Made by a program: the position numbers and the translations under genes. The notes below the pieces were generated by a model. The model saw only the letters and a program-made list of their open reading frames with translations. It did no database searches and was not told the origin of the DNA. Positions 8,682 through 24,786 of a stretch of DNA of 32,735 nucleotides are shown in pieces (positions within the stretch are counted from its first letter, which is position 1; each line of letters opens with the position of its first letter). Location of the stretch: the sequence record NC_034625.1; one strand, given 5' to 3'.

Positions 8682-8720
8682 TATACATTATATAGTATAT
8701 ACGGCGTGAAAATTTATATT
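8682..8720 (+). promoter_or_regulatory. Capsid gene promoter with class-3 palindrome variant
   Basis: TATACAT-TATAT-AGTATA (8682-8699), then TATA TTTATA at 8713, ATG at 8751. Confidence 0.65.
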
Positions 8721-8750
8721 GTAGCAATTTTAAATATAAATTGACCAAAA

Positions 8751-9155
8751 ATGGCAAAAGGAAGAACACCAAGATCATATAGTCAAAGATATGCAAAATG
8801 GTCAGCTAAATTTGCATCATTTTCAAATCCTACCGTAGCATCTACTATATTATCAAATGTTTCGCCAGTTGCACAACAAAATTTCCAAACTCATGTTCCA
8901 AAATTTACTAGCGTAAATGAACAAGTTTCCAGCGTATTGTCAGAATATGGAATTACTGGTCCTAACAGAGCCATTTACCAAGGCTTTGGTTTGAAGGTAG
9001 CTAGAGCTTTAAATAGACTTGGCGGTGGACCGGCGTTAGTAAATATGATCAACGGTTTGAAAGCTTATTATATTTCAGCATTTAATGCTAATCCAACTGT
9101 TTTGGATGCAGTCACCAACATTATAACTGGTTCACCAACTGGTTATGTAAGCTAA
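8751..9155 (+). CDS. mcp: Major capsid protein (134 aa, SIRV2-fold)
   Basis: MAKGRTPRSYSQRYAKW...GFGLKVARALNRLGGGPALVNMINGLKAYYISAFNANPTVLDAVTNIITG is the rudiviral MCP signature; T-rich terminator follows. Confidence 0.98.
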   Translation: MAKGRTPRSYSQRYAKWSAKFASFSNPTVASTILSNVSPVAQQNFQTHVPKFTSVNEQVSSVLSEYGITGPNRAIYQGFGLKVARALNRLGGGPALVNMINGLKAYYISAFNANPTVLDAVTNIITGSPTGYVS

Positions 9156-9266
9156 AAAATTATAGAATATCTTTTAAGCTATTTTATTTTTTTATTTTTT
9201 CTTTTTCAGAACTTTAGTTCAAATTTAAAATTTAAAAAAATTTGTTTTTAACTTTTTAACTTGAAA

Positions 9267-9437
9267 TTAATCATTATCATCAATTTCTGTTTCTATATAC
9301 TCATAATTTGTTTTACTTATTCTTTTACAATCACTAATTTTTACACCGGGATGATGTTTTTTCAAATGTGTAATCATAGCTTTTCTAGTTCTCGTTAAAT
9401 GTTGACAAATTGGACACTCAAATAAAAAGATACCCAT
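9267..9437 (-). CDS. 56-aa C2H2 zinc-finger protein
   Basis: CPIC-x12-HLKKHH. Start moved to ATG 9437 because a class-2 promoter lies at 9450-9467. Confidence 0.8.
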   Translation of the reverse strand: MGIFLFECPICQHLTRTRKAMITHLKKHHPGVKISDCKRISKTNYEYIETEIDDND

Positions 9438-9473
9438 GATATTTTTTAGTGTCATGACAAATAAAAAATTCAC

Positions 9474-10505
9474 ATGGAAGTGTCGAACACAGTTCGCCAC
9501 AAAACCGTAATTTTAACCATGAATTACTCATCTATTCGTAATGTGAGTGAAGATATTGCACAAGTTTTACGAAAAAATGGAGAAATTGTAACAATTTCAA
9601 CAAATCCATATTTAATTCCACAATCTGATAAATTAATAATTTTTATGCCTTTCCATCCACCATCTCTAAATCCATATTTGTATGCATTTAGAGAATTTAA
9701 AGGTAAGAAGTATTTTTATACAACTTGTGATGGTTTACCTAATACAAATATTGTAAATCAATATCTATTAGAAAATATAATATTTATTCCAAATTCAAAG
9801 TTTACAGCTCAAAATCTTCAAGAAGTTGGTCTTCAAACTGATCTTCCAGTTTTCCATGGTATAAATTTTGAAATTGTAGAAAAAGCTGAAAAATTATCCC
9901 AACAATTAAAACAAAAATTAGACAAAGATTTTCCAAATACAATAAAATTCGGAATTGTTAGTGGTTTAACTAAGAGAAAAAACATGGATTTAATGTTAAA
10001 AGTTTTCCAGGAGATAAATACTAAAATTCCAGAATTAGCCAAAAAAGTTCACTTCTTTGTAATTTCGCATAAAGACTTTAAAAATTATGAAGTTCCAGCA
10101 AATGTGCATTTTGTTGCTGAATTTGGACTAAATCCAAGAGAATATATTTATGCATTTTACAAAGTTATGGATTTTGTAATTGTTCCTTCTGGAACTGAGG
10201 GCTTTGGACTTCCAGTTTTAGAAAGCATGGCTATGGGTACTCCAGTAATTCATCAATTAATGCCACCATTTGATGAATTTACCTCATGGCAGTGGAACCT
10301 TTTGATTAAATCTAATGAAGTTGAAGAATATTATGATAAAACGCATGGACAGAAATGGAAAATTCATAAATTTGATATTCATGACATGATAAATGCAATA
10401 TTGATAGCTTCAGAATTGAAAGATAGAGAAGAAAGAAGTAGAAATCTAAAAGAATTAGCTAAGAGATATAATATAGAAAATTTATATGTCAGATTTTTAG
10501 AGTGA
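9474..10505 (+). CDS. GT-B (GT4-like) glycosyltransferase, 343 aa
   Basis: PSGTEGFGLPVLESMAMGTPVI (E-x7-E motif). Confidence 0.93.
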   Translation: MEVSNTVRHKTVILTMNYSSIRNVSEDIAQVLRKNGEIVTISTNPYLIPQSDKLIIFMPFHPPSLNPYLYAFREFKGKKYFYTTCDGLPNTNIVNQYLLENIIFIPNSKFTAQNLQEVGLQTDLPVFHGINFEIVEKAEKLSQQLKQKLDKDFPNTIKFGIVSGLTKRKNMDLMLKVFQEINTKIPELAKKVHFFVISHKDFKNYEVPANVHFVAEFGLNPREYIYAFYKVMDFVIVPSGTEGFGLPVLESMAMGTPVIHQLMPPFDEFTSWQWNLLIKSNEVEEYYDKTHGQKWKIHKFDIHDMINAILIASELKDREERSRNLKELAKRYNIENLYVRFLE

Positions 10506-10568
10506 CTTCAAGAGCTGGTTAATCGAAAAATTTATATGTTTTGAATGACATATAATTATAGTGAGACT

Positions 10569-10694
10569 ATGGAGGAAGTAATAATTGAATGTAAAAATTT
10601 CACAAAGTTTCATGTAAAGAAAAAGAAAGGTGTACAAATTAAAAATATCATACAAATGTGTCAAGATTTCGGATTAGAAATTAAGGTGTATTAA
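10569..10694 (+). CDS. 41-aa basic hypothetical protein (not in ORF track)
   Basis: Manual translation MEEVIIECKNFTKFHVKKKKGVQIKNIIQMCQDFGLEIKVY; GTGAG upstream; ends 3 nt before the next gene. Confidence 0.5.
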   Translation: MEEVIIECKNFTKFHVKKKKGVQIKNIIQMCQDFGLEIKVY

Positions 10695-10697
10695 AAA

Positions 10698-10997
10698 ATG
10701 CCAAAATATTATTATTGTTATATTTGCAAAACTACACTTATTGGAAAAAAAGAATTCAAAAAACATGCACAAAAACATTTTCATAATGAAAGATGTCCAT
10801 ATTGCAATATGAAAACAAAAAGATTGTCAATTCATTTAGCATATTATCATTTACAATTTAGAAGAAAAGCAGTCTTATTAAGGGATTTAGCAATATTAGC
10901 AAAGGAATACGGTAATATAAACTTTCTTTACGACAAAGATTTAAAAATTGACAATTACATCAAATTTCATATAAAAAGAATGATGAATAAGTTATAA
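10698..10997 (+). CDS. Double C2H2 zinc-finger protein, 99 aa
   Basis: CYIC-x12-HAQKH and CPYC-x9-HLAYYH. Confidence 0.85.
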   Translation: MPKYYYCYICKTTLIGKKEFKKHAQKHFHNERCPYCNMKTKRLSIHLAYYHLQFRRKAVLLRDLAILAKEYGNINFLYDKDLKIDNYIKFHIKRMMNKL

Positions 10998-11021
10998 TTC
11001 TTTTTTTAGTTTGTATTTTTT

Positions 11022-11219
11022 TCACTTCTTGTTTTCTGAGTTTTTGTTTAATAAAACTGCTATATCTTTGCTTATTTCTTCAGATATATTTTTAATTATT
11101 TCTAAAGCTTCTAATATTTCATCTTCTTTAAGATCTTCATTTTCACTAATTTCATCAATTAGACCAAGTTGTAATTGTAATAGAACCTCAAATTTTATTA
11201 AATCTATCTTTTTTACCAT
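11022..11219 (-). CDS. 65-aa acidic helical hypothetical protein
   Basis: ORF track; class-2 promoter at 11247-11260. Confidence 0.65.
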   Translation of the reverse strand: MVKKIDLIKFEVLLQLQLGLIDEISENEDLKEDEILEALEIIKNISEEISKDIAVLLNKNSENKK

Positions 11220-11256
11220 CTTTCCATCTAGATAGAAATTTAAAATATGACAAATA

Positions 11257-11484
11257 TCAAGTTTTACCTAGTTTTATTTTTATTTCTTCAATTTGTTTTT
11301 TTAATTCATTCTGATTTATCTTCAATTCTTCAATTTCTATTTTTAAATTTTGTAGTTCTGAATTAACTATTTCTTTAACTGCGTCTCTTAATGCATTCTT
11401 AATTTTTAAATAAAGTTGGACAATTGCGAATAGAGTAGTTACAAATGTTGAAATAATTGTTAAAATAAGAGTTATTTCATTCAT
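11257..11484 (-). CDS. 75-aa N-terminal TM plus coiled-coil protein
   Basis: Hydrophobic residues 3-25 followed by heptad repeats; overlaps the upstream gene by 8 nt. Confidence 0.75.
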   Translation of the reverse strand: MNEITLILTIISTFVTTLFAIVQLYLKIKNALRDAVKEIVNSELQNLKIEIEELKINQNELKKQIEEIKIKLGKT

Positions 11485-11845
11485 CTTTTATTCCCTCTAA
11501 TTGATCTTCTAAATTATCTAAATTTAAATTCTCATCTTCTTTAAATTTTTGGTAAACAGAATCTACTTGTTTCGCATAAGGTTGTGGGTAAACTACGCGA
11601 AAATCTGAAATACCAATTCTATTAGTTTCGGGATCTTTAGCAATGAGAAATTGAAAATAGAAAGTAAATCCAGGAATATATAAATCTACAACCATGGGCA
11701 ATTCTGCATTTTTTAAAACTATAATTGAATGAGGTAAATATTTACTAAGGCCATAAATTTGACCTTGAAGTTCTAGTTCTCTAATTTTATCTATCGCGAT
11801 TCTTACAGGACCGAAAATATTCGAAAACTCATCTTTAATTTGCAT
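11477..11845 (-). CDS. 122-aa hypothetical protein (rudiviral)
   Basis: ORF track; class-3 promoter (palindrome 11897-11916, TTTATT at 11878). Confidence 0.8.
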   Translation of the reverse strand: MQIKDEFSNIFGPVRIAIDKIRELELQGQIYGLSKYLPHSIIVLKNAELPMVVDLYIPGFTFYFQFLIAKDPETNRIGISDFRVVYPQPYAKQVDSVYQKFKEDENLNLDNLEDQLEGIKDE

Positions 11846-12014
11846 GTTTCTTTATTTCATAAAACAAGAATAAATAAACTCAAAGCAAATTTGCTATATA
11901 CATTATATTATGTATATGCATTTGTTAATGAACGCGTAAAGCATAATTAGATTATGAATTTTGAAAATATTTTAATTTTTATCAATTAAAATTGTTAATA
12001 CTTTTATCTAAATC

Positions 12015-12173
12015 TTAAGTTAATATTTTTAAAATTTTTTTCTTATCAATCTTTTTATCAGTTTTGCAAGGTATATAAAATCCTTCATGTAAATCATACG
12101 GTTCACCATACCATAATTTTTTATTCAAATTACATGGCTCAATATTCCAATCTTTTTTCTTTTTAATTATCAT
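12015..12173 (-). CDS. 52-aa Lys-rich hypothetical protein (not in ORF track)
   Basis: Manual translation MIIKKKKDWNIEPCNLNKKLWYGEPYDLHEGFYIPCKTDKKIDKKKILKILT; starts 13 nt after the 466-aa stop. Confidence 0.45.
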   Translation of the reverse strand: MIIKKKKDWNIEPCNLNKKLWYGEPYDLHEGFYIPCKTDKKIDKKKILKILT

Positions 12174-12186
12174 GTTTATCAATTCT

Positions 12187-13587
12187 TCATCTTTCAGCTA
12201 TATTTTTAAAGTTTTTGTAATAGAAGATTGGCTTATATTGTTTGGCTTTTGCAGACTTTTGAGCTAACTTAAGCGAATTTTCAACTTTTGCTTGACCTTG
12301 TAATTTCTCCCCAAGTTGTTGAGCAAATTGTAAATCAGTATTTGAAATTCCATAAAATGACCACTTATTCTTCCAATAATTCAAAAATTCATTATAAGGA
12401 AGTGTTCTTTTTCCAGTTGAATAACTATAATTTTGTTGATAAGGATATCTAGCAATTTCCAAAATTGCTGATGCTACCATTTTAGCATACCAAACATTAG
12501 AATATTTCTTATTTACAATTCTTTGGACTTGTAGAAATTGCTCATATGAAACTGCATAATTCTCAATTTCTGCAGAATATGTTATGTTTATTCCTCCTGG
12601 TGAAGGATCATAAAGATGCAATTTAAACAAACTTCCAAATATTGAAATTACAGTTTTATCAGCTGTTAAAATTGTTACTAAATCTAATTGTGTAACATTA
12701 TTAGGATTAAATTCAGGAATTAGCATAGCAAAATCTAATGGTGTATAATCCAATATCATTCCAAAAACATCAGCAAAATTTTGTAAAATCATATTATTCT
12801 CAAGTTGAACTTTATAAGTTGGAGAATTTTCAATTTCTGGAGCTAAAACACATCTATCGAGCCAACCAACATCTAACGCAAAACCACTATTAATTATATC
12901 ATTCAAATTTGGTATAAATGAAACTACAAATTTAGCTAAATCTGGAAGTTGATTAAAATTGAGATTTAAAGCATTTAACAAATCACCAACTCCAGTATTT
13001 TGAATATTATTAAGTGAATAATTATCAACATTTGGAATTTGAGTATTTCCAACTCCCAAAGTTGGAAGATCAATAGATATATTTGAAGCTGATAAACTAT
13101 TAAAATATTGTTCTATTTTTTCACATGCTTGGTTTCTATTTATAATTGTATTCGCTGACTGGAAAACACTTAAATCAAAATATGTCTCATCAAAAACTGC
13201 AGGCTGATATAAAATTGAACAAAGATTTACATAATTATCATAAAGTTGTGTAGATTTGTTTATAAAATCAAGACCAGAAGTTTGACCATAAATTCCACTT
13301 TGACCTAATTGTAGAAAACTAAATGAATTTGTATTTGGATTAAATATTGACATTGCTAAATTGTTTAATGCGGAAAGTAAAGATGAAATAATTGTAGCAT
13401 ATGCAATTCCATAATTAGTATTTATACCTGGAGGAATTTGAATATTTTCAAGTGGAGTTGGCAAAACTGAGGAAACTCCAGCGTTAAACATTTGCGAAAA
13501 AGCGGGAAAAGTATTTCTATTCAATACTTTTTGATAAAGATGATACTTCATAGATGCGATATTTCTATTACCTACTCTTCTTCCCAT
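12187..13587 (-). CDS. Minor virion protein, 466 aa (SIRV2 ORF488-like)
   Basis: Size, basic N-terminus, position between capsid gene and resolvase, class-3 promoter. Confidence 0.75.
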   Translation of the reverse strand: MGRRVGNRNIASMKYHLYQKVLNRNTFPAFSQMFNAGVSSVLPTPLENIQIPPGINTNYGIAYATIISSLLSALNNLAMSIFNPNTNSFSFLQLGQSGIYGQTSGLDFINKSTQLYDNYVNLCSILYQPAVFDETYFDLSVFQSANTIINRNQACEKIEQYFNSLSASNISIDLPTLGVGNTQIPNVDNYSLNNIQNTGVGDLLNALNLNFNQLPDLAKFVVSFIPNLNDIINSGFALDVGWLDRCVLAPEIENSPTYKVQLENNMILQNFADVFGMILDYTPLDFAMLIPEFNPNNVTQLDLVTILTADKTVISIFGSLFKLHLYDPSPGGINITYSAEIENYAVSYEQFLQVQRIVNKKYSNVWYAKMVASAILEIARYPYQQNYSYSTGKRTLPYNEFLNYWKNKWSFYGISNTDLQFAQQLGEKLQGQAKVENSLKLAQKSAKAKQYKPIFYYKNFKNIAER

Positions 13588-13721
13588 AATTATTATATCT
13601 GTAAATGTAGAAAATAAAACTTAATTCTAATACATAATATAATGTATATCAGTTTTACTCTTTGATCTCATCATATTCAATTCATAAAATATATATTTGT
13701 CATAATTTGAGTTACGAATGT

Positions 13722-14183
13722 ATGCAATTACAATTTAGAATAGAAGAAGCAAAAGATAAAGAATTAATAAAATTTGTAAGAATGTTGATAGATTATTATC
13801 ATTCTCAAGGAATGCCTTTGGGAGGCGGTGCTGGAAAAAATAGCAGATATTTTATGTATATTGCTAACGACAGTGAGCAAGATTTTATTGTAGCAGTAGC
13901 ATGGTTACACGATAATACGCCTTTTCGTTACATAGCTCAGGATTATAAAATTCCAAATGACAGAAGTTATTTTATTAGAAGAATTACTAAAACAGCTCCA
14001 GGAGATTATGACGTTAGTTTTCTAATTGATTTAGCTAAAAAGTTAAAAAATGATGGAGTTGAAGTATTATGGACACTAGGATTTCCAGAACACTCTAATA
14101 CTTTATTCAAGAAAGCTGGATTTGTTGAAGTTGGGAAAACAAATAGAACTGGACATCCAATTTTCGTGAAGTGGTTAAAATGA
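13722..14183 (+). CDS. GNAT-like acetyltransferase, 153 aa
   Basis: YFIRRI strand and C-terminal SNTLFKKAGFVEVG (GNAT motif B-like). Start moved to ATG 13722 behind class-2 promoter 13691-13703. Confidence 0.6.
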   Translation: MQLQFRIEEAKDKELIKFVRMLIDYYHSQGMPLGGGAGKNSRYFMYIANDSEQDFIVAVAWLHDNTPFRYIAQDYKIPNDRSYFIRRITKTAPGDYDVSFLIDLAKKLKNDGVEVLWTLGFPEHSNTLFKKAGFVEVGKTNRTGHPIFVKWLK

Positions 14184-14488
14184 CAATTGTTGTAATTATA
14201 GATAAAGAAGTTGAAAATTTGGAATGTATAAAAGAAGGAGGTAGAGATTTATATGATGATTTTATAGGCGTTTTGTCAGATTATGAAATTGTAAATGAAT
14301 ATGCTGTTAATGTAAGTGATGAAACATGGGGAAAAATAAGAGATGATTCTATAAAAAGATTATTTTTAGATGAAAGTGATGAACAAAGTTCATCACAAAA
14401 TGAATTTAAATATTATTTAAAAAACGCTAACTATGTATTTGTTTACAAGGACGGAAAATATAAATTATGTTTACCAATAAATGATTAA
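14171..14488 (+). CDS. 105-aa acidic hypothetical protein
   Basis: ORF track; overlaps the GNAT stop (alternative ATG at 14180 gives an ATGA overlap). Confidence 0.7.
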   Translation: MVKMTIVVIIDKEVENLECIKEGGRDLYDDFIGVLSDYEIVNEYAVNVSDETWGKIRDDSIKRLFLDESDEQSSSQNEFKYYLKNANYVFVYKDGKYKLCLPIND

Positions 14489-14498
14489 AATAAAAAAA

Positions 14499-14780
14499 TT
14501 ATAACTTATGTTTTTTAATCTTATTTGCTATATATACTGATTCGATAATTGAAAGAAGTGTTTCAAGTTGAACATCATCTTCTATGAGCATTCCAAAAAA
14601 ATAACCAAAGAAAATAATTAAAGAATCCATACTTATTTTTTCATCTTTATAACTTTCTAGTATATCGTAAAAAGCGTACTCTAAATAGCTTACTTGTTTT
14701 TCTATAATTTTAAGTGAATTTTCATCTGGATGAAAAGTTTCTTTAAAAACTTCTATTATTTTTTCTAAGCCTTTGTCCAT
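14499..14780 (-). CDS. 93-aa hypothetical protein
   Basis: ORF track; class-2 promoter at 14806-14818. Confidence 0.7.
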   Translation of the reverse strand: MDKGLEKIIEVFKETFHPDENSLKIIEKQVSYLEYAFYDILESYKDEKISMDSLIIFFGYFFGMLIEDDVQLETLLSIIESVYIANKIKKHKL

Positions 14781-14852
14781 ACTTATCTATATAAAAATTT
14801 TCATTATGACAAATTTAAACATATATATGTCATAGTTTTAAAATTTTAGCTG

Positions 14853-15236
14853 ATGAATTTTAGACAATCTGGAAAATATTATGAATATAAAACTGTTGAA
14901 TTTCTTGAAAAAAATGGCTATAAAGCTATAAGAATTCCAGTTTCTGGAACTGGAAAACAGCCAATTCCAGATATTATAGCAATTAAGGATAATACAATTT
15001 TTCCAATTGAAGTTAAATCAACTTCACAAAATTATGTTGTAGTTGATAATTTTCAAATTGATAAATTGTTTAAGTTCTGTGAGATATTCAATTTTTGTAA
15101 TTGTAAACCGTTAATACTAGTTCATTATAAAAAATATAAAAATGTCATAATATATAATTTGAAGCAAGATGTCAGAGAAAAAAGTAAAATCAAATTTGAA
15201 TACAGAAATAACAGCAAAACTGTATTTAGCACTTGA
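14853..15236 (+). CDS. hjc: Holliday junction resolvase (archaeal Hjc type)
   Basis: GKYYE, RIPVSG, PDIIA and IEVKS motifs. Confidence 0.96.
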   Translation: MNFRQSGKYYEYKTVEFLEKNGYKAIRIPVSGTGKQPIPDIIAIKDNTIFPIEVKSTSQNYVVVDNFQIDKLFKFCEIFNFCNCKPLILVHYKKYKNVIIYNLKQDVREKSKIKFEYRNNSKTVFST

Positions 15237-15378
15237 CGACTTAACATTAGCATTAGCTACTTGCGATGATGAAAATATTAGAAAGAGTGAAGTTTTTCAA
15301 AAAGCTCTAGAAGTTGTAAAAATTGTCAAAGAAATGAGAAAAATGCAAGTAAAACCGCCAGATGAAGAAAAATCCTAA
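15169..15378 (+). CDS. 69-aa hypothetical protein (SIRV ORF69-like)
   Basis: ORF track; has its own class-2 promoter (15135-15148) inside hjc. Confidence 0.7.
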   Translation: MSEKKVKSNLNTEITAKLYLALDDLTLALATCDDENIRKSEVFQKALEVVKIVKEMRKMQVKPPDEEKS

Positions 15379-15390: not shown

Positions 15391-15650
15391 TTCAAGTTTA
15401 AGAGATATCAAGTTTGATATAACTCTTTTCATCTAAAATTTTTTTCTTTATAAATCTCGTTACACTCTTTCTTTGCGTAAAATTACGTTAAGAAAAATAA
15501 AAATCTCGAGAGATAAGAGTTTAAAAAGATTTCTTGTAAATTTACGACTTTAGTTTATATACTCATCATTACAATTTGTTACGCAGTCAGCGAAATAAAA
15601 GATCATTAGATGAATTGAAAGTACGTGCTTGATTTCAAATTTCAATTTTT
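15391..15650. ncRNA. Candidate ~260-nt structured non-coding RNA
   Basis: No credible ORF; several complementary segments; bounded by a 14-bp direct repeat 260 bp apart. Strand and expression unknown. Confidence 0.35.
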
Positions 15651-15792
15651 CATATCATAAAAAAATCGAAAAGTAAAAAAGGTTTTACTTCTTCAGTTGA
15701 AAACTTCAAAAAAAGAAAGAAGATTTTTACATAAAACAATTTTTACTTTTACAACAACATTTATAATTTTATAATATACACATGATAATAAT

Positions 15793-18700
15793 ATGAGTTT
15801 CTTATTAAATCTTGGAGATTTAGGTACATTTTTTTCAGATGAGCTAACAGCATTAGAGAATTTTGCAAATTTCTTAAGCTCTGATTTTATAAACTTTTTT
15901 AGTGCAGTAGTTAATGATATTGAAAATGTTGTAAGTTTCTTAGGTCAAGCAATTAGTGATATTCCAACTTTTATGCAAAAAATTGCTAACAATTTCTTGA
16001 CGATTTTGCAAAACTTTGTACAAACTGCAATTCCAGTAGTTTCAGGATTTTTAACATTTCTTGAACAACAAATTATAAATGTATTTCAAGATTTGTCTTC
16101 TTTAGCTTCTACATTTATTAATGATGCATATTCATTTTTACAAGGTGTTGTAAATGCATTTGCAAATTTAATAAGTACAATAGTTCAAGATTTTCTAAAT
16201 AATTTTGGTCAAAATATGAAACATATTAGTTCTGCAATTTCTCAAGTTACTCAATTTTTAACTCCATTTATCGCTCCAGTCACTTTAGGAAAATTTTTGC
16301 CAGCAATAATAGATAAATTAGCTGAAATTTTGCCAGAAGTTGAAATTGATTTAGCGCCAGTTGGCTTAGGCGGAAAAATTCCAATTAACTTTGGAGAAAT
16401 TGTAAAAGCGTTTGCTGAAACTTCAGTTGACTTTTTAAATGAAGTTAGACAAGAAATACAAACTACGCTTAAGGAGTTTATAAAAGAGCCATTTATTTCA
16501 GATTTTAAAATTACTGCGAGAGAAATATTTAATGAAATTGGTCTTGGTGATTTACCATTTGCTGACCCACCATTTACACAAATAGCGAAATGGGTTGGCT
16601 CAAGATCATTTTCTGAAATAAAAGATCATTTAAGAGAAACAATTTATTTAACTGGATTTCCAGCATGGTTTACTGATGCTTATCTAGAATCTCCAGTTGA
16701 TGATTTTATTCCAAGAAATCCGTTATTTAGACCAGTAAATATAAGAGATGTAATTTTAGCTTCCCAATATGGAATTTTAGATTTTAGTGCAGTTTCGCAA
16801 TATGCAGAAAATAATTTGATAACTCCAAAAACTGCAAAATTAATGTATCAAAATGAGACTGCTAGACTTTTACAAAGAGCAGTTGAAGAAGGAATTAGAC
16901 AATTTATAGTTTCTCCAGAAAAAGCTTATCAAGAAATAATACAAAATGTAAATTTAGCTGGAAAGGATCTATTTTTAAAAGTTTTCTCTTTGGAGTATAA
17001 TTATGCAGTTCAAAGAATCGTAAGACAATTTTTAAGATCACTTTTGTCGAGAGCTTTAACGAATTTTGGAAGACCTTACATAGATTTAAAATTCCTAGAA
17101 TCTACAGTTCAAAAATTATTTAAAGAACTAAATTATCCTGAAGAAGTTCAAAATGTTTTCAACATAATGATTGAACAATCTCAAATTGTATACACTAATC
17201 AACTTTTATTATCACAACTAGAACAAATTACTAAGCTAGGAATATTTGACGAAAAGAAAGTAAAAGCAGAATTGAAAGCTAATAACTTTAATGAGCAAAT
17301 TGCACTTACAATTTTACAATATGAACTCCAATATGTACAATTACAATATATTCTTAAAGAACTTCAATTTAAACTACAAAATTATATTATTAGCACAAAA
17401 GACGCAGAAAATCAATTAAAGAAATTAGGCTTTGATTCATCTATAATTTCTGAGATAATTTTTGAATATCAAACAGCTCCATTAACAAAATATCAAATTA
17501 GCCAAATTGAAAGTTTGGCTAGAAAAGGATATTTATCAGTTGATGAAATTAAAAAACAATTACATTCATTAGGAGTAATTAAGGAATTTGAAGACATATT
17601 TATCAATTACACAAGTCAAGAAATTCAAATATCAACAACTTTAAGTATTGTAAAAGAACAATTAAGAAACTTCCTAATAGATTCAAAAACTGTAGAAAAT
17701 GAATTAAAAGTGTTGAAAATTAATGATTATTTAATAAATGAGATAATTCAAGAAGAATATAATATAAATATTGCTAAATTACAATTATCATATTTAGAAA
17801 CTTTAGCTAAGAATTTATACTATGATCAAGCTCAATTATCTAATGAATTATCCAAAATTTTGAAAGATAAAACTGCAATAGATCTTTATGTTCAAAGATT
17901 TTATTATGAATATGTATTTCCAAAAATTGTCAATTATTACGTAAGTTTAGCAAGGCATGGGATAATTGGAAATATTAAAAATTTACCAAAAGAAATTGTA
18001 GATTATGAAATTAATCCACAAATCCAAATTTTCCAACTTACAACAGAATTAGAATATATAAAATCTTTACTAAAAGATCTACAAATAACACCAACAAATG
18101 CTGAAAACGAGTTAATAAAATTAGGAATGCAAAAAGATTTAGCTAATTTATTTGTACAAACTTATATTCCGACACTTTATAGTTTACATACTATAATTGG
18201 AAATATTGTAAATGGACAACTCTTTAAAGTCGGAAAAGTACCCGTGAATCTAGGAAATGCTGAATCACAATTAAGACAATTAGGAATTCCTGAAAGTCAA
18301 ATAAAAATATTGTTAGAACAATATGCATCCAGTTTTGGTTTAGAAATTTGGAGAAAATACTTGCCTTCATTAAGTGTGATTGAGACCGCAATAAAGTATA
18401 ATTATCCAGAAAAACAATTAATTGACTATTCATTTATACCTTCTGAATTTCTTAACTTATACTCTAACTTATATCAATATGAACTAATTGGACAATATGT
18501 ACAATCCTTAAAGACTGACTATGTTCAATTATTAGTTTATGGAGTTCAAAATATTCAACTTGAAAGTATAATGAAACAATATGGAATAAATGAAGTGCTA
18601 TTAGGAGTTCTAAAATTATCAGCTCAAATTAAGAAAATATTAACGGCCTACCAAGAGTTATACTTAACACCGTCTAAAGCACTTTCTATAAGTGAATATG

Positions 18701-18978
18701 TATCAAATCCAACACAATTATTGCAAAAAGTATTTAGTGAATTTCAAGTTCCTAGTGATTTACAAAATACTTATCTTGAGTATGCAATAAATAGAAGAGT
18801 TAGGACATATGTAAGCGAAATAATCTCAACAATCAGTTTATTATTTGAGAAAGGCAAAATTGACTTAGGAACTGCTCAATCTTATTTACAACAACTACAG
18901 AAATATGGATTAACAAATGACGAAATTCAATTAATAATCCTCAATTGGCAGTTACGTTCAAATTTGTCAAGTTCATAA
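15793..18978 (+). CDS. Terminal fibre / largest virion protein, 1061 aa (SIRV2 ORF1070-like)
   Basis: Size; amphipathic helical N-terminus; repeated A/V-x-x-x-L-x-x-LG helical units. Confidence 0.88.
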   Translation: MSFLLNLGDLGTFFSDELTALENFANFLSSDFINFFSAVVNDIENVVSFLGQAISDIPTFMQKIANNFLTILQNFVQTAIPVVSGFLTFLEQQIINVFQDLSSLASTFINDAYSFLQGVVNAFANLISTIVQDFLNNFGQNMKHISSAISQVTQFLTPFIAPVTLGKFLPAIIDKLAEILPEVEIDLAPVGLGGKIPINFGEIVKAFAETSVDFLNEVRQEIQTTLKEFIKEPFISDFKITAREIFNEIGLGDLPFADPPFTQIAKWVGSRSFSEIKDHLRETIYLTGFPAWFTDAYLESPVDDFIPRNPLFRPVNIRDVILASQYGILDFSAVSQYAENNLITPKTAKLMYQNETARLLQRAVEEGIRQFIVSPEKAYQEIIQNVNLAGKDLFLKVFSLEYNYAVQRIVRQFLRSLLSRALTNFGRPYIDLKFLESTVQKLFKELNYPEEVQNVFNIMIEQSQIVYTNQLLLSQLEQITKLGIFDEKKVKAELKANNFNEQIALTILQYELQYVQLQYILKELQFKLQNYIISTKDAENQLKKLGFDSSIISEIIFEYQTAPLTKYQISQIESLARKGYLSVDEIKKQLHSLGVIKEFEDIFINYTSQEIQISTTLSIVKEQLRNFLIDSKTVENELKVLKINDYLINEIIQEEYNINIAKLQLSYLETLAKNLYYDQAQLSNELSKILKDKTAIDLYVQRFYYEYVFPKIVNYYVSLARHGIIGNIKNLPKEIVDYEINPQIQIFQLTTELEYIKSLLKDLQITPTNAENELIKLGMQKDLANLFVQTYIPTLYSLHTIIGNIVNGQLFKVGKVPVNLGNAESQLRQLGIPESQIKILLEQYASSFGLEIWRKYLPSLSVIETAIKYNYPEKQLIDYSFIPSEFLNLYSNLYQYELIGQYVQSLKTDYVQLLVYGVQNIQLESIMKQYGINEVLLGVLKLSAQIKKILTAYQELYLTPSKALSISEYVSNPTQLLQKVFSEFQVPSDLQNTYLEYAINRRVRTYVSEIISTISLLFEKGKIDLGTAQSYLQQLQKYGLTNDEIQLIILNWQLRSNLSSS

Positions 18979-18988
18979 ACTATAACTC

Positions 18989-19804
18989 ATGAGTGTAAAC
19001 CTCTGTAAATATGAAGCAGAAAATATATCATTTAAAGATTTAGAAAAGTTAAAAGATAATATATATTATGAAATTAAATATGATGGAACTCATGTCTGTT
19101 TAAAATTTGAGAATGAGCTAAAGATTCATACAAGAAAAGATATACCTCATGACAAAACTTTTCAAGAACTTTTTTTGAAAGTTCCAAATATTGAGGAAAT
19201 TATAAATTATATAAAGAAAAATAATCAATATATAATACATGGGGAACTTATACATAAAAAGACATCAGCATTACAGATTCACAAAAATGAAACTCCGGAA
19301 TTTATAATTTATGATGTCTTTGACAAAGAAAGTAACAAATATTTAAAACCAACTGAAGTTGATAGCGAAATTTATGCATGGTATCCAGAAATTTGTTTAG
19401 ATTTAGATGATTTACTTGATATTATAACTAAAGAAAAACTTGAAGGTTTAGTAGCTAAAATCTATAATCCGAAATTTGCAAATTGTGAAGAAGGCAAAAA
19501 CTTCAACTTATGTCTCTACAAATATAAACCTTATTTTTCAACTTTAGGAGTAATATTCAAGCCTATTAGAAGGGAAATTGATGTTAGACAATTATCATTT
19601 TTATTAGGAGAAATTGATAATGATTTAAAGAATAATAAAGATGAATGGTATAGAAATCATCCAGAACTTTATAAATTCTTTATCGAAAATAAAGATAAAA
19701 TAATATCTATTTTACAGAATAAGAATTTTGAATTACAAATTGAAAAAAATACACATTTAGACATTAAGAAAATTAAAGAATATATTACAAATTTCAAAAG
19801 ATAA
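18989..19804 (+). CDS. ATP-dependent ligase-superfamily nucleotidyltransferase, 271 aa, no OB domain
   Basis: Motif I EIKYDG, Ia HTR, III IIHGEL, IIIa FIIYDV, IV EGLVAK, V LYKYK; then a ~90-aa helical tail. Confidence 0.85.
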   Translation: MSVNLCKYEAENISFKDLEKLKDNIYYEIKYDGTHVCLKFENELKIHTRKDIPHDKTFQELFLKVPNIEEIINYIKKNNQYIIHGELIHKKTSALQIHKNETPEFIIYDVFDKESNKYLKPTEVDSEIYAWYPEICLDLDDLLDIITKEKLEGLVAKIYNPKFANCEEGKNFNLCLYKYKPYFSTLGVIFKPIRREIDVRQLSFLLGEIDNDLKNNKDEWYRNHPELYKFFIENKDKIISILQNKNFELQIEKNTHLDIKKIKEYITNFKR

Positions 19805-19823
19805 CAACATTTAGACCAAGCCA

Positions 19824-19862
19824 TATACATAATATTATGTATAAGCTATGTGTGTTTATTTC
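19824..19862 (+). promoter_or_regulatory. Class-3 promoter with perfect 20-bp palindrome
   Basis: TATACATAATATTATGTATA (19824-19843), TTTATTT at 19855, ATG at 19886. Confidence 0.8.
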
Positions 19863-19885
19863 TGTCAAGTTAATAATTTTTTCAT

Positions 19886-21586
19886 ATGAGCTTACCATAT
19901 AAAGTACGTTTTAAGTTACCGTTAGAATTTCTAACGTTACAAGACTGGAATAATTTTGTGCAAAATTTGTTATTTATAAATCAATATGGTTCAGCAAAGC
20001 TATTACAATATTATCAAAATGGGAATTTTCAAAATCTAAATGATGTAATTGCTGACTATTTATTTGTTTCAGCTTTAAAAGTAGCTGGATATAATGTTCT
20101 TCATAATTTATCACAACCACAAGCTTATACATTTGGGGAAGGAAAACAACAGCCATTTGAAAGCATGGCAAATAAACCAATAATTCAACTGAAGTCTGTA
20201 ATATTTCCAATTCTAAATTTTCAGATACAATTATCTAAAGTTAGTAAACAATTACAGCTACTAATTCCTAAACTAACAAGTAAAATTATAACTCCAAACC
20301 AAATTGCTGGAACACAATTCCAATTTTCTGGAACTTCAAATGTACAAACATTAATAGAAGATTATTTAGATCCATCGTATTTACAAACTTGGAGAGAAAT
20401 AATAATACAAAATCTTGGAACTTCTGCAGTTCAAATTAATAATTCTATCTATCTAATGCCTAAAAATTGTTTAAAAATAACTGCAAGTTCACCAAGTGAA
20501 ATTCAACTAACTGCTCAAACTCCAACTTTGCTAAGTGAAGAAATTGAATTTGTTGGAATTCCAATTGTTACTTATACAATTACAATAACAAATAGTCAGC
20601 CAGATCCAACTCCTTCACCATTTCAACAATTACTTCAACTTAATCTTTCTTCAATATTATCGAGTCCAAGTCAGCTTTTGAATTTACAATTTTGCTTAGA
20701 TGTTAATTGTAATACTCCATTATATGCATGGATTGAAAGTTATACTTCTAATTTATCAAATGTTTATATTTGGGTAAATTTGCCAACTTCAATACCAGCA
20801 AATTCATCAATTACAATTTATATGTTTATAAGAAATTCAATTCAGTATCCTTATACTGGAATGAGACCAGATTTATCCGTGAGTTATGCACAATATGATA
20901 ATGGAAAAAATATATTTTTAATTTATTTCAACGGAAATGAACCATTATCTAATTTTAATAATCAAGGAAATTCATTAACTCAAATATCTACAACCGGACC
21001 GTTAGGAAATACAATAAATGCAATTTATATAAGCGGTTATAATTCACATTTTGGATTTGTATATACTCCCAAATATATATCAAATCAGCCAGTAATTGCA
21101 GAATCATCTGTAATAGATTTAGGAAATCAAACAGGTGGATTAAATGCAGATAATGGATTTTCTTCAATTGTTGATAGTACTTCAATTTCTAGTTTAAATG
21201 CAATAAGTGTAGATATGGGGTATTCTGGTTCTTATTTTTCTAATGATTACTTTATAAGTGGAACTCAAACTTCCAATGTAAACCCAGCAGGAACTGCAGT
21301 ATCACAGTGGCTTTATGCATGGGTCGTATATTCTGGATCATCAAGTACTTCATGGTATGGATGTATAGCACCTCAACTTTACAGTTCTTCAGGAGGATAT
21401 TGTGGTACAGTTGGCAATAATCCATTTTCTAGTTCTTCTCAACTATATTTAGGTATAATTGGTAGTGTAAATTCTAGTTATCAATGGCAAACTGCATGGA
21501 ATTTTATGAGGTTAAGAGCTTATCCTCCAAATAACGTAATGCCTTCAAATTCTCAACCACAAAAGACAATAGTTCTAGTCACGTGA
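19886..21586 (+). CDS. Minor virion protein, 566 aa (SIRV2 ORF564-like) with DUF2341-like domain
   Basis: YTITITNSQP...PLYAWIE...IWVNLP.SIPANSSITIYM is the DUF2341-type pattern; S/T/N-rich beta C-terminus. Confidence 0.8.
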   Translation: MSLPYKVRFKLPLEFLTLQDWNNFVQNLLFINQYGSAKLLQYYQNGNFQNLNDVIADYLFVSALKVAGYNVLHNLSQPQAYTFGEGKQQPFESMANKPIIQLKSVIFPILNFQIQLSKVSKQLQLLIPKLTSKIITPNQIAGTQFQFSGTSNVQTLIEDYLDPSYLQTWREIIIQNLGTSAVQINNSIYLMPKNCLKITASSPSEIQLTAQTPTLLSEEIEFVGIPIVTYTITITNSQPDPTPSPFQQLLQLNLSSILSSPSQLLNLQFCLDVNCNTPLYAWIESYTSNLSNVYIWVNLPTSIPANSSITIYMFIRNSIQYPYTGMRPDLSVSYAQYDNGKNIFLIYFNGNEPLSNFNNQGNSLTQISTTGPLGNTINAIYISGYNSHFGFVYTPKYISNQPVIAESSVIDLGNQTGGLNADNGFSSIVDSTSISSLNAISVDMGYSGSYFSNDYFISGTQTSNVNPAGTAVSQWLYAWVVYSGSSSTSWYGCIAPQLYSSSGGYCGTVGNNPFSSSSQLYLGIIGSVNSSYQWQTAWNFMRLRAYPPNNVMPSNSQPQKTIVLVT

Positions 21587-21594
21587 GGTCAAAC

Positions 21595-21759
21595 ATGATG
21601 TTCTTTAATTCAAAATTAAGTTCATTCGGCTTTAATTCAGAATTTAAAAATCTCCAGATTTGCCTCATACCGAACAAGTGCAATTTTGGAATTGATAATA
21701 TAAAAATTATGAATATAGTTTTAAATCATTTATTCAAAATTAAGCACGTAGTGATGTAA
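21595..21759 (+). CDS. Possible 54-aa peptide (not in ORF track)
   Basis: SD GAGGT overlapping the upstream stop; ORF MMFFNSKLSSFGFNSEFKNLQICLIPNKC...HVVM exactly fills the gap, but also contains the next gene's TATA. Confidence 0.3.
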   Translation: MMFFNSKLSSFGFNSEFKNLQICLIPNKCNFGIDNIKIMNIVLNHLFKIKHVVM

Positions 21760-21761
21760 AA

Positions 21762-23297
21762 ATGTCTTCAACTTACTGCGTTCAATTACCAGAAAATCTT
21801 TTATTATTATCTATGACTACAGTAAATCCTATAAACTTTACATCTTTGCAATTTTCATTAAGCGTAAATTCGCTAGTTATATTTCTATTCTCAAAATATC
21901 CTTTTAATTCTGGTTATTACAATAATTTTTGTATAAATCAAGATGAGTTTGGATTTGCACAAGTTGGACAAACTTTCAATATAGATCTATCAAATTATCA
22001 AGGATATTATATGCTAATTTTAATTTATCCACAAGGAATTAATTTAAAGAGTTCTAAAAGTTGTGTCTCGATTCAAGGTTTAACTATGACTTTTCAGAAT
22101 ACAACAATTTCACCAATTACAAGTGAAACTGTAATTAACAATTTTGATGGTCAAGAAGAAACCGGATTTTGTACATGTTATGATGGTCAAAGTCATGTAA
22201 TAGAAATTCTATGTAATAATTCAAATTATGTTTCTGCTATTTTATTAAATAATTTAAATAATCAATTACTAATAATGACTTGTCAAGGATTTGTATATGA
22301 AAATAATACAACTGTAGGATTTATAACGCCAAGTACATGTGGTACTTTTGGTTCATATTTAACAGCAGAAATAACATTTATTGCAAATCAATCAGTTATA
22401 GATTTTCTAAATAATAATAATATCTCTTATAATATTTTATCATCTACTGAATGTCAACCAACTTATAAATTATTACCATGTACTTTACCATGTAAATCGT
22501 TTTACCAAATTACAAAATTATTATCTCCACCAACTAAATATTCTATAATATCTTCAAAATTATGGAATGAAATTGTACAAGACCTATATCTAACTTATAG
22601 TGTATTTAAATATATTAATTATTTAACACAATATGCATATTTAGACTATATATATCCTACAATTTTAGACTTTTATAATTTTTATGAAAACTTTCAACCA
22701 TATCCATTTACTCAATTATTGTATGCACAAAAAGGAATTCCATTAACTGTAAACGATTTTAACAAATTAATAGATGCAATTGTAAAATTAGCAAATGAAA
22801 ATGATATAAAATTGAAAAAAGGACTTTCTTATGTTCAGCGTGATCAAGTCGTAAGAGCTTCACAATTTGCAAATATAGTTTATAATGTTAATCAATTTCT
22901 AACTTTTAATTATAATCAATATTTTCTATTAGATTGTAATGGATCAATTTTCTCGAATTTATTGAATAAACAAAATGCATTTTTAAATGTCATAATTAAT
23001 AATTTAGTAACTTCACTTAATATTCCTTCAAACGTTTATATTAAAAACTTATTAATATATACTTCAAATCAAACTATTTATAATTATGGTGTAATAGATA
23101 AATTAATAATTAATATTAATAACGGCGAAATTTATCTTAATGGAAATTCATTTATAAATTTTCTACTTATAACTGACAATAATAATAATATTTATGTAAA
23201 TGATAATTCAGTAATAAACAATTTAATTTGTATTAGTAATACTGGCACTATAAATATCTCATCAAATGCAATAATTAAAAATAATCAATGTGCTTAA
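21762..23297 (+). CDS. 511-aa putative virion/fibre-associated protein
   Basis: Cys-containing beta-rich N-half, WNEIVQDL-type helical motifs and an Asn/Ile-rich C-terminal repeat suggestive of a beta-helix. Confidence 0.7.
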   Translation: MSSTYCVQLPENLLLLSMTTVNPINFTSLQFSLSVNSLVIFLFSKYPFNSGYYNNFCINQDEFGFAQVGQTFNIDLSNYQGYYMLILIYPQGINLKSSKSCVSIQGLTMTFQNTTISPITSETVINNFDGQEETGFCTCYDGQSHVIEILCNNSNYVSAILLNNLNNQLLIMTCQGFVYENNTTVGFITPSTCGTFGSYLTAEITFIANQSVIDFLNNNNISYNILSSTECQPTYKLLPCTLPCKSFYQITKLLSPPTKYSIISSKLWNEIVQDLYLTYSVFKYINYLTQYAYLDYIYPTILDFYNFYENFQPYPFTQLLYAQKGIPLTVNDFNKLIDAIVKLANENDIKLKKGLSYVQRDQVVRASQFANIVYNVNQFLTFNYNQYFLLDCNGSIFSNLLNKQNAFLNVIINNLVTSLNIPSNVYIKNLLIYTSNQTIYNYGVIDKLIININNGEIYLNGNSFINFLLITDNNNNIYVNDNSVINNLICISNTGTINISSNAIIKNNQCA

Positions 23298-23366
23298 TAT
23301 AGAACTTTTACATATTCGGTTTTAATTTTAAATTAAAAAGTTCTAAATTTGACCTCATAATGCTCT

Positions 23367-23849
23367 TCATAATTTACAAAATATAAATTCTTTATTATCA
23401 TCAGTTATAAAAGTTAGAACTGTACCGTATAATTTTCGCATTAAATCAAATCTGTTTTCTGTCCATTCATGAATAGCTATACAATATTGTTTGTATTTTT
23501 GTAATTGAGAAAAATCAAGTTTACTTTCGCATCCCTCACAATCCATAACTAAAATATCAGCATTTGGATATTCTTTTCCAGTCCATTCGCCGTAAACTTC
23601 AACTTTATCACATATTTGAAATTCTTTACAAACTTTTTCTTTAAATCTTTTATTCAGCTCATCACTTTTTTCATAACCAATTATTTTCTTTGCACCTTTA
23701 AGAAGAAAATACAAAGCAGAACTTCCACAATCATTTCCAATTATTATAATTGTTTTATTTTCAACTTGCAATTTTCCATATGCATAATCAAACTCATGCC
23801 AATAACAACACTCTAATTTACAAAAATAATCTTTATAATTTATACTCAT
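23367..23849 (-). CDS. SAM-dependent methyltransferase (FkbM-like)
   Basis: IIIIGNDCGSSALYFLLKGAKKIIGYE (motif I/II) and ILVMDCEGCE; SD GAGGT upstream. Confidence 0.85.
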   Translation of the reverse strand: MSINYKDYFCKLECCYWHEFDYAYGKLQVENKTIIIIGNDCGSSALYFLLKGAKKIIGYEKSDELNKRFKEKVCKEFQICDKVEVYGEWTGKEYPNADILVMDCEGCESKLDFSQLQKYKQYCIAIHEWTENRFDLMRKLYGTVLTFITDDNKEFIFCKL

Positions 23850-23851
23850 GA

Positions 23852-24655
23852 TTAAATGACCTCAAACAAAGCATAAACTTTAGCTTTCCCGGTAGCCCAT
23901 GCGTAAACATTTGCAGGATTATTTACATGTATTTCTAAACTATCATTTGGCAAAATTGGGAAATTATTGTATAGATTATTGCCAATGTAAACTATGTAAT
24001 TACTTAAATTCTGTAATATTATTCTAACAGTTTCTATGGATGGACCAGAATATAAAGGACTAGGAGTTGTGGAAACATCTAATTGTAGACCTTCTATAGT
24101 CGGCGGTGATAAATACAAACTTAATTTATTTATTGTATTAGCTAAACCAACTGTAGCTAAATATACATAGTCAAGTACATATTCTATAGAATTCGCAATA
24201 ACATAAATTGCATTTTGTAATGAAATTCCTAATTTTTTAGAAATTGAATTTATCAAAATATAAAATGACTCATAAAAGTTATCAAAATTTTGTGTAAGTG
24301 TATTACTAATTTGATTAGGTAATTTGATAATTGAGTAATATAATTGTTCATTTGAATATAAAATTAAATTTATTTGTTGTTGAGCAGTTGAAATAAATCC
24401 AGCGATATAAATTGGATCTAGTTCTGTTAAAACTGGTTGTCCAGCTATATAAATTTCATCATAGAAAAATCCAGAACTAGCATTTATTGAACCTGGAATT
24501 GTTAAATTTCCATTTTTTAGAATTGAAGTAACTGCATTTCCACCAGTCTCATACAATTGAATAAGTAAAAGTGATGCAGTATTCCACATGGAAGAAGTCA
24601 ATCTCTGAAATGGTGAAGCTAACAAACTTGAAATTGAAGCATATGTAATGCTCAT
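23852..24655 (-). CDS. 267-aa protein (SIRV2 ORF269-like), probably virion-associated
   Basis: Class-3 promoter (24698-24717); shares motifs with the 566-aa protein. Confidence 0.75.
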   Translation of the reverse strand: MSITYASISSLLASPFQRLTSSMWNTASLLLIQLYETGGNAVTSILKNGNLTIPGSINASSGFFYDEIYIAGQPVLTELDPIYIAGFISTAQQQINLILYSNEQLYYSIIKLPNQISNTLTQNFDNFYESFYILINSISKKLGISLQNAIYVIANSIEYVLDYVYLATVGLANTINKLSLYLSPPTIEGLQLDVSTTPSPLYSGPSIETVRIILQNLSNYIVYIGNNLYNNFPILPNDSLEIHVNNPANVYAWATGKAKVYALFEVI

Positions 24656-24786
24656 ATGTTTATATACTTAAATTGTAGTAAAAATAAACTCATAGCTTAT
24701 ATATCATATTATGTATATAGCTTGATCTAATTGATCTTATAACGAATTAGCAATATTTTAATTTGTCATGAACTTGAGAAATAATT

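Follow-up and report, generated by a model that had tools for sequence, protein, structure and literature searches.

A conserved 20-bp dyad marks a virion-gene-centred promoter class in the rudivirus SIRV10 and is a probable upstream operator

Five promoters in the genome of Sulfolobus islandicus rod-shaped virus 10 (SIRV10; Rudiviridae, Usarudivirus; Yellowstone) carry a recurrent 20-bp dyad, TATACAT-N6-ATGTATA, upstream of the TATA box. The window analysed here, 32,735 bp in length, is the complete SIRV10 record (KY744230.1 / NC_034625.1), identical to the deposited genome, with 25% G+C and 49 annotated genes. Our results support the dyad as a real cis-element, kept by selection, that characterises a single class of promoters. 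Most likely, it is a duplex DNA operator to which a sequence-specific protein would bind as a dimer or dimer-equivalent, with a regulon centred on virion genes.

Searching the genome with TATACAT-N6-ATGTATA retrieved two exact matches (starting at 11897 and 19824), two sites with one mismatch (13629 and 24698) and one with two mismatches (8682), and these are the five main copies of an original prediction made from the letters of the window, each found where it had been placed. Their consensus is TATACAT-WATATW-ATGTATA. The degenerate one among them is the copy at the capsid promoter, a position where SIRV11, SIRV4/5 and SIRV1-3 have a canonical copy. When the whole genome was shuffled 300 times with preservation of dinucleotides, 0.04 sites with at most one mismatch were expected against four observed, and 0.86 sites with at most two mismatches were expected against five observed, a number reached in 1 of the 300 shuffles. 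Because the very AT-rich intergenic DNA represents a fair background, the internal intergenic DNA (3,572 bp, 19.6% GC) was also shuffled on its own 1000 times, resulting in an expectation of 0.146 sites, with none of the 1000 shuffles reaching five. A position weight matrix trained solely on the dyad sites of other rudiviruses was then used to score both strands of the whole SIRV10 genome. The five sites scored 20.4-26.8 bits, and the sixth-best 20-mer genome-wide scored 7.7 bits. Therefore, coding DNA contains no equal-scoring matches, a point on which the original prediction had left itself open, and its proposed comparison with a shuffled, AT-matched background places the five sites far above chance. 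Given that the genome contains 247 pairs of short inverted repeats, palindromy alone is unremarkable, and it is the recurrence of the same palindrome that represents the special feature. Two degenerate copies that had been added to the regulon score as background: the one before the 1061-aa gene (15726-15745) has 0.0 bits and ranks 60 genome-wide, and the one before the 511-aa gene (21696-21715) has −11.6 bits and ranks 1329, neither being conserved in relatives. Both genes are thus excluded as regulon members.

Three kinds of promoter can be distinguished among all SIRV10 upstream regions. Terminal genes are preceded by GAGAAAA(C)TTTAAATATAAGTTTAGA, the early/anti-defence regulatory sequence of Bhoobalan-Chitty et al. 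(PMC11065993). Many genes have a TATA box followed by TGTCAT, which is the virus-specific GTC element of Kessler 2004 according to PMC5569661. In the third kind a TTTATTT box comes after the dyad, replaced at the capsid gene by TTTATAT, so that TTTAT(T/A)T lies 3' of all five dyads. The dyad never occurs together with the early-gene sequence in the listed upstream regions, nor is it found at TGTCAT-type promoters, in line with the original observation, which had not seen it at early or class-2 promoters. In the order gp18, gp25, gp27, gp35 and gp38, the gap between the dyad and the TTTAT box is 11, 18, 10, 11 and 9 bp, and the distance from the box to the ATG is 38, 33, 31, 31 and 33 nt. The predicted geometry (9-18 bp and 31-38 nt) therefore holds, as does the predicted location upstream of the B recognition element (BRE) and the TATA box, with no overlap. 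The six bases 5' of the TATA box in four of the five promoters (TTTGAG, ATTAAG, TGTGTG and TATGAG) do not form the purine-rich BRE of the early class, the exception being the capsid promoter with its GTGAAAA. All five dyad promoters are situated centrally in the SIRV10 genome. Later-expressed SIRV2 genes are reportedly concentrated in the genome centre, and the genes behind the dyad may be expressed late.

Four virion-protein genes are annotated in relatives (ORF134, ORF464/488, ORF581/564 and ORF1059/1070; ORF, open reading frame), the first three of which carry the dyad, leaving the fourth, SIRV10 gp33 (1061 aa, the ORF1059/1070 ortholog), without one. Extra copies exist in Icerudiviruses before ORF399, which heads a permease and tRNA-guanine transglycosylase operon, and before ORF335 (glycosyltransferase). 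Thus, the predicted structural regulon stands in that three of the four virion genes belong to it, and does not stand as a purely structural one. The other two SIRV10 dyads precede the 122/75-aa and the 267-aa/methyltransferase operons, and the suggestion that these contain morphogenesis genes is a guess; gp24 and gp25 are present in 11 of the 11 rudiviruses compared.

Conservation was followed by anchoring upstream regions with tblastn, using the N-termini of SIRV10 proteins, in 11 rudivirus genomes, subsequently extended to 13, and in 33 rudiviral IMG/VR contigs. The dyad occupies orthologous promoters in Usa-, Ice-, Azo- and Hoswirudiviruses with diverging flanks, and many metagenomic rudiviruses also carry it at orthologous promoters. 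It precedes gp25/ORF110, gp35/ORF562-564 and gp38/ORF268-269 in all SIRVs and in SRV, with a variant at the last of these promoters in SBRV1. At the capsid gene it is found in SIRV11, SIRV4/5 and SIRV1, 2 and 3, as TATACAAAATATTATGTATA in SSRV1 and MRV1, and as TATACATAATATTAGGTATA in ARV3. At gp27/ORF488 it is complete in Usarudiviruses, reduced to the distal half alone in SIRV1-3 and present as the variant TATAATTAATATTATGAATA in SSRV1 and MRV1. In SIRV2, the genes counted as palindrome-bearing are gp14, gp26, gp32, gp39 and gp42. No recognisable copy was found in ARV1 (39% GC) or SMRV1 (47% GC). Intergenic DNA is hard to align between these genera, and the dyad and the TATA box form the conserved islands within it. 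Usa- and Icerudiviruses place the end of the dyad at identical distances from the ATG (49 nt for the capsid gene, 51 nt for gp25 and 42 nt for gp35), and for gp25 this distance is 50 nt in SRV.

In a set of 38 distinct sites, no position carries more information than the cytosine at position 5 (1.63 bits against a 25% GC background), which in an otherwise A/T-only motif argues for base-specific contacts. The promoter-distal half together with the centre (ATATACATWATAT) is better kept than the proximal half, with SRV showing the opposite orientation. A variant half-site, TATTCAT/ATGAATA, was found both in symmetric sites and paired with the canonical half, so selection does not maintain the complementarity of the arms. 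Covariation between the half-site variant (TATTCAT versus TATACAT) and virus lineage gave no clean signal, the variants being mixed within genomes. In two metagenomic rudiviruses the gp38 promoter has TATTCAT-AATATT-ATGAAT and the gp35 promoter of the same contigs has TATACAT...ATGTATA, indicating that the A4/T4 position is tolerated in either state within one virus. Most Usarudiviruses have two palindromes 5' of the capsid gene with a start-to-start distance of exactly 60 bp (7562-7581 and 7622-7641 in SIRV11); the distal copy is absent and the proximal copy degenerate in SIRV10, and SIRV1-3 retain a decayed second copy some 60-70 bp upstream. A scan for exact TATACATWATATWATGTATA over 2.9 million IMG/VR contigs returned 40 loci, 33 of them on contigs that encode rudivirus proteins. 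The same exact-match scan over 185,579 species (one genome each) returned 73 loci with none in Sulfolobales, degenerate host sites being possible. The sole crenarchaeal match was an Aeropyrum contig from a metagenome-assembled genome (MAG) without rudiviral genes, and on these exact matches a host origin of the motif was rejected. Coordinates of the features are collected in Table 1.

Table 1. Dyad copies, associated TATA boxes and genes in the SIRV10 window
Feature	Coordinates	Strand	Remarks
Dyad copy, capsid gene gp18 promoter (TATACATTATATAGTATATA)	8682..8701	+	20.4 bits; promoter-proximal half degenerate
TTTATAT TATA box, capsid promoter	8713..8719	+	BRE-like GTGAAAA before; 11 bp after dyad; 38 nt to ATG
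gp18, major capsid protein, 134 aa	8751..9155	+	Annotation
Dyad copy, gp25 promoter (122 aa)	11897..11916	-	Exact match, 26.8 bits
TTTATTT box, gp25 promoter	11872..11878	-	18 bp after dyad
gp25-gp24-gp23 (122, 75, 65 aa), likely operon 3' of dyad	11022..11845	-	Proteins without assigned function
Dyad copy, gp27 promoter (466 aa), in divergent intergenic region common to gp27/gp28	13629..13648	-	25.9 bits; TATACATTATATTATGTATT in gp27 direction; 10 bp to TTTATTT
TTTATTT box, gp27 promoter	13612..13618	-	
gp27, 466 aa	12187..13587	-	Ortholog of SRV ORF464 and SIRV2 ORF488; virion/structural annotation in relatives
Dyad copy, gp35 promoter (566 aa)	19824..19843	+	Perfect 20-bp palindrome
TTTATTT box, gp35 promoter	19855..19861	+	11 bp after dyad
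gp35, 566 aa, DUF2341	19886..21586	+	Ortholog of SRV ORF581 and SIRV2 ORF564; structural protein per SRV annotation
Dyad copy, gp38 promoter (267 aa), in divergent intergenic region common to gp38/gp39	24698..24717	-	21.4 bits; TATACATAATATGATATATA in gp38 direction; 9 bp to TTTATTT
TTTATTT box, gp38 promoter	24682..24688	-	
gp38 (267 aa, no assigned function) and gp37 (S-adenosylmethionine (SAM)-dependent methyltransferase), likely operon 3' of dyad	23367..24655	-	
gp11, 90 aa, predicted single-chain tandem ribbon-helix-helix protein, candidate binder	6542..6814	-	AlphaFold2 (AF2) model

The location of the dyad just distal to the BRE and TATA box, combined with the weak BREs, suggests the architecture of an upstream activating site. 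Archaeal sites of this kind likewise lie close 5' of the BRE and TATA box without overlapping them, and the SIRV10 dyad occupies the same location. At such sites the bound factor raises transcription; for the dyad the evidence is indirect, in that the host protein Sta1 stimulates SIRV1 promoter 134 in vitro (PMC1635249), an effect to which an upstream and a core-promoter site may both contribute. Gaps between dyad and TATA box in SIRV10 and its relatives cluster at 9-11 bp, ~18-23 bp and ~28-29 bp, with 9-11 bp in most orthologs, and this clustering suggests, without proving, phasing on one face of the helix. In the model that we favour, with moderate confidence for the reading as a whole, the operator would have the core ATATACATWATAT, usually extended to the dyad TATACAT-WATATW-ATGTATA, and would sit two to three helical turns 5' of the TATA box, immediately beyond a weak BRE. 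Its promoter class would serve the capsid gene, two genes for minor virion proteins and a pair of conserved operons without assigned function. A sequence-specific dimeric protein would bind the operator, help TBP and TFB to assemble at these intrinsically poor promoters and in that way co-ordinate expression of the virion-gene block.

Which protein might bind the dyad can be apportioned roughly. Something other than the two candidates described below has the largest share, though one short of half; Sta1 is a possible binder, and the viral gp11 family is an unlikely but reasonable one. Sta1 (SSO0048), a host protein and a dimeric, Lrs14/MarR-like winged helix-turn-helix protein, was purified from cell extracts on the SIRV1 promoter fragments 56, 134 and 399 (Kessler et al. 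2006, PMC1635249). We found the dyad in two of these fragments, 134 and 399, at SIRV1 positions 11073 and 5204. Promoter 134, that of the capsid homolog, was mapped experimentally, and DNase I treatment revealed two protected regions of ~20 bp, one over the core promoter and one ~30 nt upstream, with an imperfect inverted repeat (PMC1635249). Given that the Reg2 oligonucleotide maps to SIRV1 11102-11131, which is the core promoter, and that the SIRV1 capsid dyad occupies 11073-11092, the upstream footprint should by its coordinates lie on or beside the dyad; matches to the Sta1 consensus near this upstream region start at 11060 and 11072 only. Sta1 activates promoter 134 in vitro, and its stimulation is strongest there, especially when TBP or TFB is limiting (PMC1635249). 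The likeness thus extends to the same promoter in a sister virus, a dimeric protein and activation in vitro. It ends where the recurrence of the 20-bp dyad, its other copies and its family-wide conservation begin, none of which is reported in the Sta1 paper. The host sso0777 promoter must contain a CANGNA core (CATGTA) for Sta1 (PMC2175319), a sequence that the half-site ATGTA of the dyad resembles; the arrangement TTATT - CANGNA - TTATT, whose motifs are essential at that host promoter, was found nowhere in the SIRV10 genome. The 16-bp Sta1 consensus ATNT-N8-(A/T)NAT is matched by four of the five SIRV10 dyads, as ATATACATWATATWAT.

The viral candidate, gp11, was modelled by AF2 from an 11-sequence alignment (predicted local distance difference test 91.7, predicted template-modelling score 0.81), and the model shows a beta-alpha-alpha unit twice in one chain (E6-13 H15-23 H25-37 / E53-60 H61-73 H78-89). 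Its top two fold matches in the PDB are F-plasmid TraY (template-modelling (TM) score 0.60) and AvtR of lipothrixvirus AFV6 (TM 0.39), with non-significant E values of 0.4-0.9. TraY and AvtR are known single-chain tandem ribbon-helix-helix (RHH) proteins, and the gp11 model has the same layout. Sequence searches with gp11 gave no Pfam match at E<=0.01 and none in the PDB, the sole family match being a PHROG of unknown function, and it was the structure prediction that proved informative. AvtR recognises imperfect inverted repeats at a number of viral promoters and, when its concentration is low, can act as an activator (PMC5569661); it differs in that its consensus, ATnnTnnTAnnACnTT, is unlike the dyad, and with insignificant fold matches the link between gp11 and the dyad is a proposal. 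The family has been listed without function as the "SIRV4 gp10" RHH cluster (PMC9976892). Homologs are present in every dyad-bearing rudivirus (SIRV1-11, SRV, SBRV1, SSRV1, MRV1, ARV2 and ARV3), and in the dyad-less ARV1 and SMRV1 none was found even at E<=10. Because ARV3 and ARV1 both infect Acidianus and only ARV3 has the dyad and a gp11 gene, this distribution is not simply a host effect. In SIRV10, gp11 heads a leftward operon of replication genes, with genes for a protein like single-stranded-DNA-binding protein (SSB), a helicase and a nuclease, a position that would suit a middle-gene product switching on virion genes. That the dyad is the target of the gp11/SIRV4 gp10 family, and that this family turns on virion-gene promoters across most Rudiviridae, is a proposal to which we attach rather low probability.

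RHH proteins are the commonest predicted regulators in SIRV10. Other predicted DNA-binding proteins, namely the helix-turn-helix protein gp04/Aca8, gp14/SvtR and the aCcr1-type RHH protein gp15, have known or proposed targets already. The C2H2 zinc finger gp19, whose AFV1 relative prefers GC-rich DNA, was rejected as the binder on account of its restriction to Usa- and Icerudiviruses, a range narrower than that of the motif. Separately, an unannotated 90-aa homolog of gp11 with 55-57% identity was located in SIRV1 (6048-6320, +), SIRV2 (9468-9740, +) and SIRV3 (7306-7587, +), where it lies in a ~500-bp 'gap' between the Rep and SSB genes and apparently uses a non-ATG start. The divergent region between gp11 and gp12 (Rep) of SIRV10 (6815-6885) contains TGACAT-N10-ATGTCA, which represents two TGTCAT (GTC-motif) promoters placed back to back on either side of a lone TATACAT half-site.

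Several points weigh against the proposed operator and its candidate binders. The promoter-proximal half-site is often degenerate, and an operator 5' of the BRE could nucleate a spreading repressor, as proposed for SvtR (PMC5569661). Overlap of the Sta1 footprint with the dyad is deduced from coordinates, and since the Sta1 consensus ATNT-N8-WNAT occurs 10.6 times per kb in SIRV10, its match to the dyads is not discriminating. Promoter 56, which lacks the palindrome, is also bound and activated by Sta1; promoter 399, which has it, is not reported to be stimulated; and the measured dissociation constant of Sta1 for Reg2 is ~10 uM (PMC1635249). Furthermore, a recent review views proteins of the Lrs14 family, Sta1 included, as largely non-sequence-specific, AT-preferring nucleoid proteins, and the published consensus as merely AT-rich (PMC11841832). 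As for gp11, its case is one of co-occurrence, with two independent absences (ARV1 and SMRV1), and pull-downs from infected cells yielded no extra virus-encoded band (PMC1635249).

The foremost rival explanation keeps the operator and reverses its sign, so that an early viral or host protein would hold virion promoters off by spreading or bending toward the BRE and TATA box until titrated or replaced. Most characterised archaeal-virus regulators repress, and SvtR acts ~80 nt 5' of the TATA box, presumably by polymerising along DNA (PMC5569661). The abundance of predicted RHH regulators noted above fits such a protein, and the conservation and statistics of the dyad suit a repressor as well as an activator. 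However, the dyad does not overlap the BRE, the TATA box or the transcription start, its spacing to the TATA box is tight and roughly helix-phased, and the BREs are weak, the capsid promoter having been transcribed well in vitro only when a factor was added (PMC1635249). We regard repression as rather improbable. We give a very small chance to the possibility that no dedicated binder exists and that the dyad belongs to a promoter cassette which recombination or gene conversion has copied among promoters, or is an AT-rich bendable or melting element boosting initiation non-specifically. Flanks are indeed partly common within a genome and lineage-specific (GC(T/C)A...AGCTATG in SIRV10 and AACTCA...AGATTTG in SIRV1-3), longer stretches held in common, among them CCATATACATTATATTTATTATATGAATTATAG, recur in SIRV1-3, and AT-preferring, non-specific Lrs14 proteins bind such DNA (PMC11841832). 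By contrast, between genera the flanks change and only the dyad and the TATA box are conserved, the most information lies in the fixed C and G, set among A and T, AT-richness alone does not account for the motif, given that none of the 1000 intergenic shuffles reached five sites, and the position relative to the ATG is fixed across genera.

A nucleic-acid structure, either an RNA hairpin or terminator of the upstream gene or a DNA cruciform for replication or resolution, would account for a perfect or near-perfect inverted repeat, for the two copies that lie 3' of a same-strand gene (after gp34 and after gp26) and for the presence of a virus-encoded Holliday-junction resolvase. This explanation is scarcely credible and was rejected, because three of the five copies are flanked by divergent genes, where they are unlikely to be transcribed, and the stems are weak: six to eight A/T-rich pairs with −2.1 to −5.6 kcal/mol at 37 C and z-scores of −0.4 to −3.9, which would melt at the growth temperature of ~80 C. 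In addition, arm complementarity is not maintained in mixed sites (TATTCAT with ATGTATA), and palindromy is in itself unremarkable among the many short inverted repeats. The location between divergent genes and the weak hairpins point to the DNA duplex as the functional form, as the upstream-operator reading would have it.

Known rudiviral motifs were also compared with the dyad, and SvtR, aCcr1/gp21 and the Aca8 early motif were rejected as its identity, given that their consensuses mismatch and their promoters are different ones. SvtR (SIRV1 gp08, an RHH protein) likewise has a rudiviral operator distal to the BRE and TATA box of a virion-gene promoter, that of ORF1070, which is the SIRV1 ortholog of gp33 and a known SvtR target (PMC5569661). 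It differs in that its consensus, ATnnTTCAAnAnnnnnAAAATG, is unrelated, that it represses, and that its target is the virion gene without the palindrome. ATnnTTCAAnAnnnnnAAAATG has no exact match in SIRV10, and no match with up to three mismatches overlaps any dyad. The region 5' of the 1061-aa gene (15640-15792) contains an A-rich ACTTCAAAAAAAGAAAGAAG, with three mismatches to the SvtR consensus at 15701, ~70 nt before the TATA box, and this stretch resembles the distal SvtR site reported at SIRV1 ORF1070. The aCcr1-box AGTATTA, bound by SIRV2 gp21/ORF59b at sites that include some viral 'middle-late' promoters (PMC9976892), is likewise short, A/T-rich and recognised by a core rudiviral RHH protein (gp15 in SIRV10). 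Its reported viral targets, however, are gp17 and gp20-21 and not the dyad promoters (PMC9976892), and none of the 13 AGTATTA copies in SIRV10 lies within 60 bp of a dyad. The Aca8-associated early sequence is likewise conserved, class-defining and found through shared upstream motifs; it belongs, by contrast, to terminal early/anti-defence genes with a strong purine-rich BRE and TTTAWATA, for which repression by Aca8 has been proposed (PMC11065993).

The dyad had been taken as undescribed. A palindromic operator 5' of a promoter is an ordinary kind of element, and the SIRV1 promoter 134 copy lies where the upstream Sta1 footprint should be and was apparently footprinted already (PMC1635249), so the dyad is not wholly undescribed. 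What stands is that in that study the footprinted site was not recognised as a recurrent 20-bp element; full-text literature searches, which did not cover several key older papers, turned up no text that describes the dyad as recurrent, sets out its regulon or notes that it is conserved throughout Rudiviridae. How archaeal viruses time their transcription is poorly understood, and the characterised regulators are mostly repressors with one or few known targets. The dyad supplies a defined, family-wide cis-element, a short list of target promoters with that of the capsid gene, the strongest, among them, and two concrete proteins to consider as binders. The rudivirus virion-gene switch is now directly testable in SIRV2 and S. 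islandicus LAL14/1, for which reconstituted transcription and genome editing exist, and through the dyad the question whether Sta1 regulates specifically or belongs to the nucleoid proteins can be taken up again. If the gp11 proposal were true, it would represent a dedicated virus-encoded middle-to-late activator with its regulon in a crenarchaeal virus, a kind not yet described. The dyad promoter would also be a compact regulated module for Sulfolobus genetics.

Several minor observations were made along the way. The exact 20-mer occurs once each in dozens of MAGs of gut Clostridia/Oscillospiraceae (for example, several 'Candidatus Fimenecus'), which may be more than expected of unrelated genomes and may reflect a conserved element there. 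The 271-aa gp34 (18989-19804) matches the adenylation domains of RNA ligases and ATP-dependent DNA ligases (PF09414, 3.6e-11; PF01068); its gene forms an insertion between the orthologs of ORF1070 and ORF564, and of the 11 genomes compared only those of Usarudiviruses contain it. At the left end of the window, nucleotides 1-297 are the reverse complement of nucleotides 298-594 with 97% identity. This fold-back, which looks like assembly read-through of a covalently closed hairpin terminus, gives rise to artefactual mirrored ORFs at 20-575. The right end (32735) matches left position 1141, with 400 of 400 positions identical in the inverted terminal repeat, indicating that the record covers its two ends to unequal extents, in keeping with the label 'partial genome'.

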